64,000 nucleotides of DNA, taken from NCBI RefSeq assembly GCF_902713615.1, contig NC_052158.1, positions 13,388,546 through 13,452,545 of the forward strand, given 5' to 3'. Under the pieces are notes generated by a model. It searched no databases. It had not been told where the DNA came from and worked only from the letters and a program-made list of their open reading frames with translations. This document shows positions 6,417 through 44,345 of the stretch, one piece after another (positions within the stretch are counted from its first letter, which is position 1; every line of letters begins with the position of its first letter). The DNA is from Scyliorhinus canicula (lineage: Eukaryota). Both the position numbers and the translations under genes were made by a program.

Positions 6417-8340
6417 TCTGCCAGCGAAGTAATTCGCACGACGGTTGTCCGGTCGTGTTGCACTCGCCATTTCTACCTTACTGTCACCCCCCATCACAGG
6501 TACCCCCCCCCCCCCCCCCTCAAGCAACCAGTAAAGGCGACACGATGGGAATTTTCCCGCGGAGTTGCTGCATCCGCTTTTTGTAGCTTTCGATTTGACC
6601 TGGCTGAAAGTAACTTTTTCATAATTTAACTACGGGTGACTGACATTGTTTTGTGTGCTGGGGTCCGGGGTGGAGACTGCTCGATCGAACTTTCGGATGG
6701 TAAGTGACACTATTATTATTTTTATACAGCTGAAGTCAAGTCTCTTCCATTAATGATTGTCCATTATTCGATATGACTGGTAGCAGTGAAAGCAACCAAG
6801 GCGGACGTTACCTGTGCGCCCTCCGAGCCATTTTGAGTGCTGCATCAGTGCATTGCAGCTTCAGTTGTGTTCGCTTTGAGCTTAAAACTCGATGTTTGTT
6901 AAAAGTACGCCTGAGATGAAGCCTCGGTCATCAACCGAATAAATATGTTATAAACTTTATTGCTAGAAGCTATTCTATATTAAAGTAATTATTAGTGTGT
7001 CGCATACGGACTAAACAATGAATGGCTTCGCGCTACAGGTGGCTATGTTCAATTTACTTTCTGTGTAGCAAATACGTAAAATATGCAAATAACGTTTATA
7101 TAATCTTTATTAGTGTCACACGTAGGCTTACATTAATACTGCAATGAAGTTACTATGAAAATCCCCTATTCGCCACACTCCGGCGCCTGTTCGGGTATCT
7201 TGTCTGTAATAGACGCTCTAGATTGGGTAAATGGATTCCACGCAGGAGAATCTGTAGAGGGGAAGATGGTGTGTTATGTAAGACCTGAGGAGACTAAGCA
7301 GAAGACCGGTCATCAGGTGGACGGTAGTGGGACAGGAAAAAAAACAATACATTAGAAGCCAGTCAGTATTGCGTCTATATTTATTGCCGCAAATATAGAC
7401 ACCTATTTTACATCCTTTCGTTCCAGGTAAACGAATGGAAGCGATTATCAGTGGTAAACAAGAGTGTAGTTTGTGCAATAGCCACCTACCTAACAGGAGT
7501 GAACACTCAATGTAGAAGGGGAATTTTATTAGTAATCGACCTCCCGGCGTAAATGAGGCACTGGGAGGCCAACAGAATAGCTATAAATTTTGTTGTGTAT
7601 TAAGCTGGTCTCCTAAATAACTTGATTAAAATACAATGCTAAAATATATTAAATTAAATCAAAGTTGTGAGGATTCAGGTTAAATAGTGGGAATAGGGAA
7701 GGCGTTACATAGTTAAATCGAAGCTGAAGATTAGATCTGGCCAATGGATAGGCCGCTCATGATGGGCCGAATGTCCACCTTCTGTTCTGTATTATCCCAT
7801 AATGCTGTAACTTAAATGAGGAAATCGTTGTTGATTTTCCAGCATTGGATTAACTGTCGCTCTGTCATTGCTTACAAGTTGCCCTTCAAACGCTGTCAAT
7901 GGCAAGTTCAGCTATTCCCAATCCCCACATCGAAACATTTGTTCATGCAGCAGCACGTTGTTATTCCCTGGATATTTACCAATTAATTTAATGATTGCAA
8001 TTTTCTAGAATATGAAAGTGGAACATTTGTCGCGCCGTTCTAAGTGTTTTCTTTGAGCGACTTTTAGTGACTCGTTCAGACTGACAATCCTCTTTGGTAT
8101 ATTTTTTTTAAAAAAACAATCCTGTGGTTTAATTCGGACTTTATGTTCCTTTCAGATTTCTGATACATGAAACGATCTCTCCTGGAATTATTCTACGAAT
8201 TATAGCTGCAAATTAAATAATCACAGGGATTAAAACGATTTATGTGTGCAAATGGAAGGGCTCTTAAAAGTCAAGTTAATTTAATAGTTACAGGGCTTTC
8301 GATTCACGTTAGACTTGCTCGTGTGCGTTTGTCTCACTGG

Positions 8341-8430
8341 ACAGAGATTACTGTGGCCCTGGGAAAACCCTAGCGTGTCAGGGTCGGTAAGGAAAGCAAT
8401 ACGCAGGGGAACGTCGGGAGCTTTACGCAT
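8341..8430 (+). other. Probable non-coding 5' exon of the NCR3-like gene (start undefined)
   Basis: Two donor-like sites (TCG|gtaagg at 8387, CAT|gtaagt at 8431) lie upstream of the strong acceptor tttttgattcctAG at 8510-8511. Confidence 0.45.
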
Positions 8431-8519
8431 GTAAGTCTTGTACTATGAACTACCCATTGTAAATCATGATTAGAACGTAGATTTCCAATATATATATTTT
8501 TTGATTCCTAGATGAAGCA

Positions 8520-8562
8520 ATGAATCCCTCTACCCTGCTGTGGATCACAATGTTACTCTTCA
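8520..8562 (+). CDS. NCR3: NKp30/NCR3-like receptor, leader exon (MNPSTLLWITMLLF)
   Basis: ATG at 8520, hydrophobic signal-peptide core, and a phase-1 donor A|gtaaga at 8563. It splices in frame to 9350 (A+CG = Thr). Confidence 0.85.
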
Positions 8563-8614: not shown

Positions 8615-9225
8615 AGCAAAGTAAAGTAGCTGAGGTCTTAAACATAGGAAATTTGGAGCAGCAGTAGGCCACTCGGCCCCTCGAGTCTGCTCTGCCATTC
8701 AATGAGCTCATGGCTGATCTGATTCTAACTTCAATCCCTGCCCATCCCCGAAAGCCTCACGCCCCCTTGCTAATCAATAATCCATATCACTCTTAAATAT
8801 AGCCGAAGGCTCTGCTTACACTTTCCATTTAGGCAGTGGGCGGAACGGTGGCACAATGGTTAGTACTGCTGTCTCACAACTCCAGGGATCCGGTTCAATT
8901 CCAGCCTCGGTTGACTGTGTGGAGTTTGCACTTTCTCCCCGTATTTGCATGCGTTTCCTCCGAGAGCTCCGGTTTCCACCTACAGTCCAAAGGTGTGCAA
9001 ATTTAGCCATGCTAAATTAGCACTTGGTTTCCAAAAGGTTAGGTTGGATTATGGGGATAGGCTGGAGGCGTGGGCCTAAGTAGGACGCTGTTTCCAAGGG
9101 CCTCCTTTTGCATTGTAAATTCTTTCATTCCATAATTTCATAATTTCAGAGACTCACAGCGCTCCTGGAGAAAATATTTTCCTGATCTCCGTCTTAAATG
9201 AGCGATCCCTTATTTTAAAACAGTG
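8615..9225. mobile_element. CR1 3' fragment (-) interrupted by an HE1 SINE (+, about 8842-9115) in intron 1
   Basis: CR1 tail cagcagtaggccactcggcccctcgagtctgctctgcc. HE1 head ggtggcacaatggttagtactgctgtctcac. Confidence 0.75.
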
Positions 9226-9349: not shown

Positions 9350-9703
9350 CGCCAACAGCTAGCAAGATCAAAGTGTTTCAAAAGCCGTCCTCCATTGTGA
9401 CTACCGAGGGAAACACAGTCCATCTTCTCTGCACTTACAAAACATCTCACGCTCAACAGAACGGTGCTTTCTCCTGGCACAAAAACGTCAGAAATGGATC
9501 AGGAGATTCGAGAGTGACAAATAAATCCAAAAGATACACGGGCAGGATTATGGAGGTGGACAGATCATCTTTCAAAGCCAATCAAAACGCTTCGATCGCG
9601 ATCAAAAACGTGAAACAGGAGGACTCAGGCACCTACTACTGTCATGTGGAAATATTATTCGGCGAGAAACAGTTTGGACCTGGAACAATATTAACAGTTG
9701 AAC
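9350..9703 (+). CDS. NCR3: NKp30/NCR3-like receptor, Ig V-set exon with J-like G strand
   Basis: Acceptor atcttacAG at 9348-9349 and donor C|gtaagt at 9704, phase 1-1, 118 codons. Has the B-strand Cys (HLLC), C-strand Trp (FSWHK), GR..F..ASIAI..V..EDSGTYYC and FGPGTILTVE. The motif pattern (YTGR, YYCHVEIL) parallels NKp30 (FRGR, YVCRVEVL). Confidence 0.9.
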
Positions 9704-9739: not shown

Positions 9740-10172
9740 TGTCTGGGAGAGAGCGCGAGTGAGCGAGAGTGGGCGAGAGAGAGAGACATCGGAGAATTTT
9801 TATCAGAGACACAGATGACGAGATATACGAATGATTCACAGGTAGAAAGGTAGACAGCTGGACCGGCACATAGATAGACAGGCAGATCGACAGGCGCACA
9901 GACANNNNNNNNNNNNNNNNNNNNNNNNNNNNNNNNNNNNNNNNNNNNNNNNNNNNNNNNNNNNNNNNNNNNNNNNNNNNNNNNNNNNNNNNNNNNNNNN
10001 NNNNNNNNNNNNNNNNNNNNNNNNNNNNNNNNNNNNNNNNNNNNNNNNNNNNNNNNNNNNNNNNNNNNNNNNNNNNNNNNNNNNNNNNNNNNNNNNNNNN
10101 NNNNNNNNNNNNNNNNNNNNNNNNNNNNNNNNNNNNNNNNNNNNNNNNNNNNNNNNNNNNNNNNNACAGATA
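9740..10172. repeat. GA/GACA/GATA-type simple repeat flanking an assembly gap (N 9905-10165)
   Basis: gagagagcgcgagtgag and gatagacaggcagatcgacag directly precede 261 Ns. Confidence 0.85.
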
Positions 10173-10910: not shown

Positions 10911-11113
10911 ACCAGAAGCAACGCAATAACAGCGGAAGTTCAATACTTTGGGAGCTGATTATGATGGGAGTGAAGCTTGCAGTGTTTGCTATGTTTATCA
11001 TTGTAACAATATCTCTCGTACATTGCTACGATTCTCGAGGTTCTGCTATGACCTTCACTTCAGTTGGAGAGGAAGTTGATTCATCCCGCAAATGCTCCAT
11101 GGAACATGGGTAA
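10911..11113 (+). CDS. NCR3: NKp30/NCR3-like receptor, stalk/TM/cytoplasmic terminal exon
   Basis: Acceptor ttctccatAG at 10909-10910, phase 1 (C+AC = His). TM is LIMMGVKLAVFAMFIIVTISLV with one Lys. Stop TAA at 11111-11113. Confidence 0.85.
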
Positions 11114-11172
11114 AATAAACCGATGGACATTTTGAGCAGTTTGATTTACAATTGATTATTGAGTGAAATAAA
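11114..11172 (+). promoter_or_regulatory. Candidate polyadenylation signals
   Basis: AATAAA immediately after the stop codon (about 11114-11119) and again near 11167-11172. Confidence 0.5.
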
Positions 11173-11624
11173 AAGTGTATTAATTGTAGTTGTCGGAACG
11201 TTATCTGTGTTCAAGTATGTTTATACGTTCATCTTTTCTTCGTGCAGTTTTCTGAGTGTTTTAATGTTCGAATTTGCGTTCCGTGTTCTCAAAGTAATTA
11301 AAGCGGATGGCTGAAATGAAATGAAATGAAAAAAGCATTTATAGAGAATTGCATATGTCCCAGGTGCCCACTTTGAACAATTTTACCTATTACATGGTGA
11401 ATCAGCAAAGGGGAACATGCCAAGATGCTAAGATATTCATAATGTACCATATTTTCACGGAGAGACAGGGGCCGGATAGGTGTTTGATAGAAGTGGAGTG
11501 TGACTTAAATGTTCAGGAAACATAAAGCAACCGTAAACGCGGAACAGACCATTTATCATTATAAGCGATCATTTTTTGTGCTCTCTATTTCATAACCATT
11601 GAATACACATGCAATATATAAGCA

Positions 11625-12030
11625 CAAATGGCGGCACAGTGGTTAACATTGTTGCCTCACAGTACCGGGTTCAATTGTGTCCTTGGGAAACTGTCGGTGT
11701 GGAGTTTGCACGCTCTCCCCATTCCTGCGTGGGTTTACTTATGGTGCTCCGGTTTCCTCACACATTCCAAAGGTATGCAGGTTAATAGGGTTGGCCATGA
11801 CAAATTGCCCCTTAGCGTTCCAAAATGTGCAAGTTAGTTGGGGTTGAGGGGAGAGGATGGGGGAGTGGGCCTAGTCAGGGAGCTCAGGGGCCTTCCCCTC
11901 CCAGGGAGGGTGGGGGGCGTCTCCCGCTCTTTCGGAGGATCGGTATTGACTCGACGGGGCCGAAAAGCTTCTTTCTACAAAGTAGGGATCCTATGAAATG
12001 TGTGCTGCATAATTTATATGTATTCCGATT
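11625..12030 (+). mobile_element. HE1-type SINE
   Basis: Head ggcggcacagtggttaac, core gtgtggagtttgcacgctctcccc...gggtttacttatggtgctccggtttcc. Confidence 0.85.
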
Positions 12031-36299: not shown

Positions 36300-39200
36300 C
36301 ATTAAAAAAAAAGAATAATAATCTTTTATTGTTGCAAGTATGAAGTTACTGTGAAAAGCCTCTAGTCGCCACATTCCGGCGCCTGTTAACATAGAACATT
36401 GGACATAGAACAGTACAGCACAGAACAGGCCCTTCGGCCCTCGATGTTGTTCCGAGCATTGTCCGAAACCAACACCAAGCGATCCCACTCCCTGTCATTC
36501 TGTTGTGCTCCATGTGCCCTTCCAATAACCGCTTGAAAGTTCCGAAAGTGTTGGACTCCACTATCACAGCAGGCAGTCCATTCCACACCCTAACCACTTT
36601 CTGAGTAAAGAACCTACCTCGGACATCCCTCCTATATATCCCACCCTGAACCCTATAGTTATGCCCCCTTGTAACAGCTACATCCACCCGAGGAAATAGT
36701 CTCTGAACGTCCACTCTATCTATCCCCCTCATCGTCTTATAAACCTCCATTAAGTCGCCTCTCATCCTCCTCCTCTCCAAAGAGAAAAGCCCTAGCTCCC
36801 TCAACTTTCCTCATAAGACCTATCTTGCAAACCAGGCAGCATCCTGGTTAATCTCCTTTGCACCCTTTGCAATGCTTCCACATCCTTCCTATAGTGAGGT
36901 GACCAGAACTGCACACAATACTCCAAATGTGGTCTCACCAGGATCATGCATAGTTCCAGCAGAACCCCGCGGCTCTTAAACTCAAGCCCCATTTTAATAA
37001 ACGCTAACACACTATACGCCTTCTTCACAGCTCTATCCACTTGAGTGGCAACCTTCAGAGATCTGTGGACATGAACCCCAAGATCTCTCTGTTCTTCCAC
37101 ATTCCTCAGAACCCTGCCGTTGACCCTGTAATCCGCATTCAAATTTTTTCTACCAAAATGAATCACCTCGTATTATTCAGGGTTAAACTCCATCTGCCAT
37201 TTTTCGGCCCAGTTCTGCATCCTATTAATGTCTCTTTGCAGCCTACAACAGCCCTCCACCCCATGTACTACTCCACCAATCTTGGTGTCATCAGCAAATT
37301 TACTGACCCACCCTTCAGCCCGCTCCTCCAATTGATTGATTAAAAATCACAAATAGCAGAGGACCCAGCACTGATCCCTGTGGTACACCGGTGGTAACTG
37401 CTCTCCAGTCTGAAAATTTTCCATCCACCACCACCATCTGTCTTCTATGTGATAGCTAGTTACTTATCGAATTGGCCAAATTTATCTCTATCCCACGCCT
37501 CCTTACTTTGTTCATGAGCCGAACATGGGGAACTTTATCAAACGCTTTAGCAAAATCCATGTATATACATCAACTGCTCTACCTTCATCTACACACTTAG
37601 TTACCTCCTCAAAGAACTCAATCAAATTTGTGAGGCAAGACTTACCCTTCACGAATCCGTGTTGACTATCCCGGAATAAGTTGCATCTTTCCAAATGCTC
37701 ATAAATCCTATCGTTCAGGAGCTTTTCCATTAACTTACCGACCACCGAAGTTAGTCTAACCAGCTTATAATTACCAAGGTCATTCCTATTCCCTTTCTTG
37801 AACGGAGGAACAACATTCGCCACTCTCCAGTCTTCTGGCACTATCCCCGTGGACAGTGAGGACCCAAATATCAAAGCCAAAGGCTCTGCAATCTCATCCC
37901 TGGCCCCCCAAAGAGTCCTTGGATATATCCCATCTGTCCCAGGGGACTTGTCGACCCTTGGAATTTTCAAAATTGCTACTACATCCTTCCCCAGAACATC
38001 TACATCCTCCAGCCTACCCGCCTAAATCACAATCTCATCGTTAAAAACATGGTCCCTCTCCTTGATGAACACTGAAAAAAGTATTCATTCAACGCTCTCC
38101 TATTTCTTCTGACTCCAGGCACAATTTCCTTGACCGGCCCTAGCCTCACCTTGGTCATTCTTTTATTTCGCACATAAGAGTAAAAAGCCTTGGGGTTTTC
38201 CTTGATCCGACCTGCCAAGGACTTCTCATACCCCCTCCTAGCTCTCCTAAGACCTTTTTTTTTTAGCTCATTCCTTGCTACCTTGTAACCTTCAAACGAC
38301 CCAACTGAACCTTGATTTCTCATTATTACATATGCTTCCTTTTTTCCTCTTGACAAGACATTCAACCTCTTTTGTGAACCATGGTTCCCTCACACGGCCA
38401 TTTCATCCCTGTCTGACAGGGACATACCTATCAAGGACACACAGTACTTGCTCCTTGAACAGGCTCGACTTTTCATTTGTGCCTTTGCCTGACAGTTCCA
38501 GTTCCCATCCTATGCTTCCTAATTGTTGCCTAATCGCATCATAATTACCCGTCCCTCAATTATAAACCTTGCCCTGCCGTATGGCCACATCCCTCTCCAT
38601 TGCAATAGTGAAAGACACCGAATTGTGGTCACTATCTCCAAAGTGCTCTCCCACAAACAAATCTAATACTTGACCCGGTTCATTACCCAGTACCAAATCC
38701 AATGTGCCCCCCCCCCCCTTTTGTCGGCCTATCCACATATTGTGTCAGGAGACCCTCCTGCCAACACTGTACAAAAACTTCCCCATCCGAACTGTTCGAC
38801 CTATAGAGGTTCCAATCAATATTTGGAAAGTTAAAGTCAACCATGACAACTACCCTGAGACCTCCACACCTATCCATCATCTGTTTTGCAATTTCTTCCT
38901 CCACATTTCTATTACTATTTGGGGCCTATAGAAAACTCCTAACAATGTGACCGCGCCTTTCCTATTTCTAACTTCGGCCCATATTACCCCAGTAGGCAGA
39001 TCCCCTTCGAACTGCCTTTCTGCAGCCGTTAAATTATCCTTGAGTAACAATGCTACTCCTCCACCTCTTTTACCACCTTCCTTTCTCTCACTGAAACGTC
39101 TATACCCCAGAACATCCAACAACCATTCCTGTCCCTGTTCTAACCATGTCCCCGTAATGGCCACAACATCGTAGTCCCAAATACCAATCCACGCTCCAAG

Positions 39201-39606
39201 TTCACCTACCTTATTCTGGATGCTCCTTGCATTGATGTTGACACACTTCAACCCACCTTTCTGTCTGCCGGTACACTCCTGCGACCTTGATACCCTCCTG
39301 AGTACCTCACTAGTCTCAACACTGGCTTCTGGACTGCAGCTCATATTCCCATCCCCCTGACAAATTGGCTCCAATTATCTACGTAACTGGAACCCTCTCT
39401 CCTGCACCATCCCTGCCACGTGTTTATCTGCACTCTCTCCCTTTTCCTCACCTCGCTAGCACGTGGCACCGGCAACAAACCAGAGATGACAACATGGTTC
39501 GTCCTGGCTCTCAGCTTCGGGTAAGCCGGTACAGGAATTGAACCCGCGCTGCTGGCCTTGTTCTGCATTACAAACCAGCTGTCTAGCCCATTGAGCTAAA
39601 CCGGCT
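36300..39606 (-). mobile_element. tRNA SINE (36300-36387 plus 39518-39606) split by a 3.1-kb CR1 (36388-39517)
   Basis: The SINE halves join as ggcgcctgtt|cgggtaagccggtacaggaattgaaccc, matching the copy at 1789. The CR1 gives INARSIQNKVGEL, VFYRP, GDFNFP-like, FVKGKSCLTNLIEFFE and RRMRGDL. Confidence 0.92.
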
Positions 39607-43155: not shown

Positions 43156-43209
43156 ACGAAAATAGAAAAATGTATCCAGATACGATAATCGGTGTACTGC
43201 TGATATCTG
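43156..43209 (+). CDS. Candidate second leader exon (MYPDTIIGVLLIS, ATG at 43170); downstream exons not visible
   Basis: Acceptor tttgccttcacAG at 43154-43155, ATG in aaaATG context, a hydrophobic core and a phase-1 consensus donor G|gtgagt at 43210. Confidence 0.55.
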
Positions 43210-43900
43210 GTGAGTATTAAGCTTGTTTGCAACATTTATTTACATTCGGTAATCGGATGTGAATATCACTGGTTAGGTGAGCAATTACTGGACGCCAGTT
43301 GTCCTTGAGACGTTGGTGATGAGGCGCCATTATTATCCGGTCCAATCCTTGTGATGGAGCTACACCTACAACGTTGTTGGGAGGGCGTTCCACAATTTAG
43401 ACCCAGCATAGTGACGGAAGGAGAACATTGCTTCAAATCGGGATGATATGTAGGTGCTGGTTTTGTCATACATCTGCTGCCATGTATCTCTGAGTTGGTA
43501 GCTGTTGGGGATTTGGAAAGTGCAGTAAAAGGAAGCTTGGATAGTTGCTTTTCTTTATCTAGCATATAGAACACACGGATTTCACTGTGCAGCAATGGTA
43601 ACAGGAACCAAAGCATCCAGCAGTGTACTTTTTCTCAAATGGTGGAAAATATGTGAGCCAGGTTTTGCCGACTCACCTATGCAATTGGGACATATTCTAT
43701 CGCACTCCTGAGTTCTGAATTACAGATGTTATATTTCAGAGGGTCGGTGCAGACTCAGTTGGCCGTTAAAGTCTTACAATATAACATTATTATATTGTTA
43801 CTTCGGGGCTGAATTATTTTTTTTCTTTTAAACTTGGTTATGAATTATGCTTACTTCCTTTTTCTCCTCATCTCCTTTTGGAATATATGGCAGGATATTT

Positions 43901-44345
43901 NNNNNNNNNNNNNNNNNNNNNNNNNNNNNNNNNNNNNNNNNNNNNNNNNNNNNNNNNNNNNNNNNNNNNNNNNNNNNNNNNNNNNNNNNNNNNNNNNNNN
44001 NNNNNNNNNNNNNNNNNNNNNNNNNNNNNNNNNNNNNNNNNNNNNNNNNNNNNNNNNNNNNNNNNNNNNNNNNNNNNNNNNNNNNNNNNNNNNNNNNNNN
44101 NNNNNNNNNNNNNNNNNNNNNNNNNNNNNNNNNNNNNNNNNNNNNNNNNNNNNNNNNNNNNNNNNNNNNNNNNNNNNNNNNNNNNNNNNNNNNNNNNNNN
44201 NNNNNNNNNNNNNNNNNNNNNNNNNNNNNNNNNNNNNNNNNNNNNNNNNNNNNNNNNNNNNNNNNNNNNNNNNNNNNNNNNNNNATCTATCGATCTATCG
44301 ATCTATCTATCTATTAATCCAATCTATCCATCTATCTATTTATCT
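43901..44345. repeat. Assembly gap (384 N, 43901-44284) followed by a (CTAT)n-type microsatellite
   Basis: Seen directly in the sequence. Confidence 0.95.

Follow-up and report, generated by a model that had tools for sequence, protein, structure and literature searches.

An exon at positions 9350-9703 (forward strand) of a 64-kb stretch of Scyliorhinus canicula DNA (64,000 nt of contig NC_052158.1; the whole stretch analysed is called the window below) encodes a V-set immunoglobulin (Ig) domain to which a J-like strand is already joined in the germline. Such an exon raises the question of whether it belongs to a receptor that has never undergone rearrangement, of which family this receptor would be a member, and of whether the gene is intact and able to produce a receptor. 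We consider it quite probable that the exon is part of an intact and transcribed gene of the activating type of natural cytotoxicity triggering receptor 3 (NCR3, or NKp30), for which a mechanism using a membrane lysine and an adaptor is proposed by analogy. The VJ domain of NKp30 is a remnant of receptors that did not rearrange and that came before antibodies and T-cell receptors (TCRs), and to our knowledge NKp30 is the sole NK-cell receptor traceable across jawed vertebrates. The gene in the window is a further member of the published shark NCR3 family and represents no new kind of receptor.

The VJ exon and the transcribed gene

The exon at 9350-9703 (+) is bounded by an acceptor (...cttacag|CG at 9350) that follows a polypyrimidine tract and by a donor (GAAC|gtaagt) after 9703, and its boundaries are in phase 1 at either end. 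The translation of 9352-9702 covers 108 of the 109 positions of the Pfam V-set profile (E=2.6e-19) and is therefore a complete domain, with the canonical Cys-Trp-Cys core and three N-x-S/T sites. Its C-terminal end reads ...DSGTYYC-HVEILFGEKQ-FGPGTILTVE; the J-like G strand, FGPGTILTV, is contiguous with V, and a CDR3-like loop of ten residues separates the Cys from the F of FGPG. No heptamer (CACAGTG or CACTGTG) of a recombination signal sequence (RSS) occurs within the exon, and a relaxed scan for heptamer, 12/23 spacer and nonamer between 8000 and 11500 gave a single weak match (10637, minus strand, 1+3 mismatches); the same scan of the whole 64-kb window gave 15 such matches, which is the chance level. 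The initial annotation had described a germline-joined V-J domain in one exon, having a ten-residue CDR3-like loop and lacking an RSS. The splice sites, the Pfam match and spliced contigs without mismatches confirm the first part of this description, and the translation and the two RSS scans confirm the rest.

Transcript evidence was taken from contigs of public runs of the same organism. These runs had been labelled as RNA by guess, and we regard the contigs as derived from mRNA because they are spliced and carry a poly(A) tail. Contigs of two runs, X1 and X4, carry the VJ exon with 0 mismatches and with GT..AG joints on both sides, and the downstream joint (9703>10911, GT..AG) is present in both runs. 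Record 9 of X4 (depth 9.3) connects 8511-8562, 9350-9703 and 10911-11100 and includes the leader (signal-peptide) exon at about 8512-8562 (+), which has its ATG at 8520, contributes 14 codons plus one base and ends with the donor A|gtaag; the joint 8562>9350 is again GT..AG. Record 1 of X1 (687 nt, depth 72) connects a non-coding 5' exon at 8200-8430 (+), which extends at least about 72 nt further upstream, with 9350-9703 and with 30 nt from 10911, the joint 8430>9350 also being GT..AG. The terminal exon at 10911-11188 (+), found in contigs of both X1 and X4, encodes the stalk with an NNS site, the transmembrane helix, the tail and the stop codon (TAA, 11111-11113), and contains AATAAA at 11167-11172. 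We place the poly(A) site at 11188, because in record 5 of X1, which covers 10911-11188, an A-rich tail with no counterpart in the genome begins there, 16 nt past AATAAA. The coding sequence composed of 8520-8562, 9350-9703 and 10911-11113 is an open frame of 199 codons distributed over three coding exons. The exon structure, splicing and polyadenylation of the gene are thus established.

Two 5' splice forms of this gene were found in the contigs: one without the signal-peptide exon in X1 (depth 72) and one with it in X4 (depth 9). In X1 the bin depth of the leader exon is 0.05, and the only 5' form assembled from this run skips that exon. The leader-skipping form has an in-frame TAA at 8388-8390 in the 5' exon and no ATG thereafter, and therefore cannot encode a membrane protein; the productive, leader-containing form was assembled in one run only, X4, at a depth of about 9. 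These two forms may reflect regulated unproductive splicing or may be an artefact of what the contigs retain.

The same observations lead to the alternative that deserves the most attention, namely that the gene is transcribed yet silent or decaying, its RNA being mostly non-productive for want of a signal peptide and yielding little or no receptor. It is in X1, the run of the highest depth, that 8430 is joined directly to 9350, and the 5' exon used there contains the stop and offers no downstream ATG. Against this reading, all three coding exons are open and have canonical splice sites, and orthologues in six species share the core residues, the glycosylation sites and the membrane motif. Moreover, the leader-containing form was assembled in X4, and contigs drop minor variants, so that the X1 contigs do not demonstrate its absence from that run. 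We therefore regard a silent or decaying member as improbable and keep to an intact gene.

Several minor observations concern the same transcripts. Two positions of the terminal exon read differently in the X1 contig and in the window: G>T at 11101 replaces Met by Ile in the cytoplasmic tail, and G>C at 11143 falls in the 3' UTR; both differences are probably allelic. Raw reads of an oligo-dT run, X8, were placed only on a SINE in intron 1 and none on the exons, a result that comes from one third of a run of unspecified tissue and says nothing on silence of the gene. Copies of this very abundant shark SINE lie at 8650-9060 (intron 1) and at 11620-11830 (downstream of the gene), where contig depths reach into the thousands, and they were the source of all spurious long joints in the read placement. 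Concerning the existing annotation, neither of two protein searches, one with the V domain and one with nurse-shark NCR3, found a catshark product of compatible size; the latter returned three proteins, none of them from catshark, and the former returned no match at all and so missed even the nurse-shark NCR3 of 170 aa, to which the identity is 64%. The gene may therefore be absent from the existing annotation, as the initial annotation had proposed, and these searches indicate this weakly.

Placement of the gene in the NCR3 family

The most direct evidence for the family of the gene is its full-length similarity to published shark NCR3. A homologue search of 1.84 billion representative proteins gave, among its top matches, the nurse-shark protein QTT61904.1 (170 aa), which was deposited as natural cytotoxicity triggering receptor 3. 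The full product of the window gene is 57% identical to this protein from residue 1 through the membrane segment (E=2e-70) and 58% identical to a sawshark homologue, and for the V domain alone the identity with QTT61904.1 is 62-64%. When ten further single-V matches were sampled for their names, nine were NCR3 or NCR3-like (nurse shark, zebra shark, lungfish, Xenopus, two salamanders and three frogs), and a stingray match from a separate name look-up was also NCR3-like. The names of the amphibian matches can be trusted, because a salamander NCR3 searched against the PDB finds human NKp30 first (E=1e-14).

We constructed a maximum-likelihood tree of 96 V domains, using 117 columns and rows picked by similarity to the query. 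The V domain of the window is sister to nurse-shark NCR3 and the bamboo-shark orthologue of that protein (SH-aLRT 93), and this group is nested in a clade of five rows (98) and then in an elasmobranch clade of 13 rows (98). A set of 60 NCR3 rows (85) adds the other elasmobranch NCR3-like sequences and the NCR3 of amphibians and lungfish; SIRP, the teleost VJ receptors and Ig lambda lie outside this set. The V domain thus groups with NCR3 and apart from Ig lambda, in a tree that samples Ig lambda by a single row, lacks TCR and mammalian NKp30 and has deep nodes of moderate support (80-86). In AU tests, placing the window V domain with SIRP gave p=0.2 and placing it with the single Ig lambda gave p=0.45, so that neither placement was rejected; these tests have low power in that the constraint can be satisfied by moving a long outgroup branch beside the window V domain. 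Judged from the sequence comparisons, membership in the published shark NCR3 family is secure.

For the link with mammals, a profile of amphibian and lungfish NCR3 used in a protein search returned mostly amphibian proteins and no mammalian ones. As this search had brought in no mammalian sequence for the tree, human NKp30 was compared through the PDB and Swiss-Prot. When a profile built from the 22 nearest V domains was searched against the PDB, human NKp30 was the best single-domain chain, with 82.8 bits in one stretch covering 105 of 114 positions, as against 62-66 bits for domain 1 of SIRPalpha and about 33 bits per domain for antibody V domains; the entries ranked over NKp30 are multi-domain chains whose totals sum several domains. 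The AlphaFold2 (AF2) model of the VJ domain (pLDDT 92) was compared with known structures using Foldseek. Among PDB entries NKp30 occupied ranks 1-4 (TM 0.79-0.83, rmsd 2.3-2.9 A, about 30% identity), and the next best was SIRPalpha (TM 0.66-0.73, rmsd 4-5 A). Among Swiss-Prot entries all five of the NCR3 entries took ranks 1-5 (TM 0.84-0.85), followed by CD79B (TM 0.72). Because the tree is limited in its columns, sampling, deep nodes and AU results, the profile and the fold bear most of the weight for the link with mammalian NKp30. With the predicted fold, the profile, the tree and the full-length identity to published shark NCR3 all in agreement, the fold and the family placement are established, and the proposal that this is a non-rearranging receptor gene of the NKp30/NCR3 family is upheld.

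The names given to homologues by automatic annotation, such as 'pIgR-like', 'SIRP beta-2-like', 'cd79b' and 'IgSF11-like', suggest that the gene could belong to another non-rearranging VJ-type family (SIRP, CD79b, pIgR-like or NITR-like), and chains of pIgR and SIRP do rank high in the PDB sequence lists; the AU test for SIRP is also too weak to rule out an affinity with that family. The pIgR totals, however, belong to chains of five domains and in no case include the J strand, domain 1 of SIRPalpha scores 16-20 bits under NKp30 by profile, and the fold matches of SIRP and CD79B are clearly worse than that of NKp30. The window protein has a single V domain, without the C1-set domains of SIRP and without the ITAM of CD79b, and in the tree the teleost VJ receptors stand apart as a clade of their own. 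We consider membership in any of these families very unlikely, and NCR3 remains the preferred assignment.

That the gene is instead a germline-joined V-J gene of Ig or TCR can practically be dismissed: pre-joined Ig clusters exist in cartilaginous fish, the domain has a canonical FGxGT J motif, and in a single-sequence PDB search lambda light-chain V-J domains were among the best matches (38-40 bits, against 35.6 bits for human NKp30, which gives no separation), but the VJ exon is spliced directly to the stalk/transmembrane exon with no C1-set constant exon present or used, no RSS remnant was found in the scans described above, the profile, the fold and the tree all favour NKp30, and the match to NCR3 extends over the full length and takes in the membrane segment.

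The J-like motif itself was also reexamined within the NCR3 family. In an alignment to 3NOI, the equivalent place in human NKp30 reads GTGNGTRLV, and the contrast drawn in the initial annotation between FGxG here and TGNG in human NKp30 is correct. The first position of FGPG is variable across the NCR3 family (F, Y, T, C, S or R), and the F of the window domain is nothing special within the family.

Membrane segment and proposed function

The product is a type I membrane protein of 199 aa composed of a leader, one VJ domain, a short stalk, a transmembrane helix and a tail of 30 residues; the NNS site of the stalk is one further N-x-S/T site. According to hydropathy, the transmembrane helix spans about residues 144-169 with a hydrophobic peak at 148-166, and Lys154 lies within the most hydrophobic 19-mer, in the context G-V-K-L-A-V-F. 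A motif scan of the 30-aa tail found no ITIM, ITAM or YxxM. The combination of a membrane-buried basic residue and a short, motif-free tail is the signature of receptors coupled to ITAM-bearing adaptors that have an acidic residue in the membrane.

The stalk and the membrane segment follow one pattern, S-x-x-W-[EQ]...G-[VL]-K-L-x-[VI]-F, in the window gene as well as in its relatives from nurse shark, bamboo shark, sawshark, horn shark and a stingray. In the sister subtypes the membrane segment is uncharged, and a long tail carries ITIM-like V-x-Y-x-x-[LV] motifs. On the strength of this shared motif, the activating-type lineage with the membrane lysine predates the split of sharks and rays. 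The initial annotation had suggested a lineage-specific paralog; we instead regard the gene as part of an old lineage, because the same subtype with its lysine-bearing membrane segment has been kept from catshark to stingray.

On this basis a mechanism can be proposed by analogy with the transmembrane arginine of human NKp30. The VJ domain would presumably bind a cell-surface ligand, and the buried Lys154 would pair with an acidic membrane residue of an ITAM-bearing adaptor (CD3zeta, FcRgamma or a DAP12-like chain), so that ligand binding would lead through the adaptor to lymphocyte activation. The ligand of mammalian NKp30 is B7-H6, and no B7H6 homologue was found in the 64-kb window. In human NKp30 the transmembrane charge binds CD3zeta/FcRgamma (PMC12272517), and by this analogy the catshark receptor probably signals through a partner chain. 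The window gene would then serve as the activating counterpart to the ITIM-tailed members of the NCR3 family.

A broader proposal, which we offer tentatively as a possibility that is less likely than its converse, is that the lysine-bearing, short-tailed lineage is the functional counterpart, and possibly the orthologue, of the activating NKp30 of mammals and forms a paired set with an ITIM-tailed gene. If this were true, adaptor-coupled NKp30 signalling and paired NK-type receptors would have existed at the base of jawed vertebrates. Independently of this proposal, the present analysis adds a complete and RNA-supported gene model of an activating-type NCR3 in another shark and leaves unchanged the picture drawn by the published work on shark NCR3. 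The conservation of the membrane lysine from sharks to rays helps annotation and the selection of candidates for studies of adaptor pairing and ligand binding in cartilaginous fish.

Comparison with known receptors and other features of the window

The shark NCR3 family, with eight named nurse-shark subtypes, was described by Kinlein et al. (2021, Immunogenetics 73:333; GenBank MT914154-MT914161), as that work is cited in PMC10450919 and PMC12227049, and the latter calls shark NCR3 MHC-linked. The nurse-shark protein QTT61904.1 and the window gene agree in architecture: a leader is followed by a single germline VJ domain, a short stalk and a transmembrane helix whose Lys lies in G-[VL]-K-L-A-V-F. 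They differ in that the window gene has a complete tail of 30 aa, whereas the deposited nurse-shark sequence ends with the membrane segment. Mammalian NKp30 (human O14931; 3NOI, 3PV6 and 6YJP) likewise combines a single VJ domain from one exon with a short stalk, a basic membrane residue and a short tail, and is the best structural match over both structure collections (TM 0.79-0.85, rmsd 2.3-2.9 A, 27-31% identity). The two products are similar in size (199 aa in the window and 201 aa in human) and differ in the membrane residue, which is Lys in the window product and Arg in human NKp30, and in the start of the G strand, FGPG as against TGNG. Human NCR3 has four coding exons with alternative tail exons, as compared with the three coding exons of the window gene.

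Two other groups of receptors resemble the window gene in part. UrIg and UrIg2, non-rearranging VJ-C genes of elasmobranchs, likewise have a germline VJ domain in one exon and a split leader and have been discussed as relics of pre-RAG receptors, but they carry 3 to 11 C1-type domains and are expressed mainly in liver or gill, whereas the window gene has no C domain (PMC12227049). According to the same work, UrIg/UrIg2 are nearer to Ig/TCR than NCR3 is, and NCR3 serves as the root of the tree. The view in the initial annotation that a receptor of this kind stands close to the pre-RAG ancestor is therefore dated, and another NCR3 copy has limited interest in that respect because UrIg/UrIg2 are nearer to Ig/TCR. 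Domain 1 of SIRP alpha/beta and the teleost VJ receptors (NITR-like) share the J-like GxGT strand, and these families comprise activating members with a charged membrane segment and inhibitory members with an ITIM; they differ from the window gene by their lower profile and fold scores, separate clades and extra Ig domains.

Outside the gene described above, a six-frame motif scan and tblastn with 157 related proteins found no further V, transmembrane or ITIM-tail exon anywhere in the 64 kb, even at E=5. A second NCR3-like gene is represented at 43171-43210 (+) by an orphan leader exon, which has an ATG, 13 codons plus one base and the donor G|gtgagt. It agrees at 13 of 14 positions with residues 1-14 of the Scyliorhinus canicula protein XP_038644574.1 ('IgSF11-like') and, less closely, with an ITIM-tailed subtype. 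In the readable sequence it is not followed by any V, transmembrane or tail exon, and a run of 384 N (43901-44284) starts 690 bases downstream.

Much of the sequence between the receptor exons is filled by LINE fragments. One group lies at 36346-39374 (-), with matches to reverse transcriptase (RT) and to endonuclease/exonuclease/phosphatase at 37512-39374, and RT-like ORF pieces lie at about 15.7-18.5 kb, 25.7-26.4 kb and 50.7-52.4 kb; a scan of ten long ORFs gave one RT match and one endonuclease match. The two runs of N, at 9905-10165 and 43901-44284, are located in introns or downstream sequence beside simple repeats, which are of the GA/CAGA type before the former and of the ATCT type after the latter.
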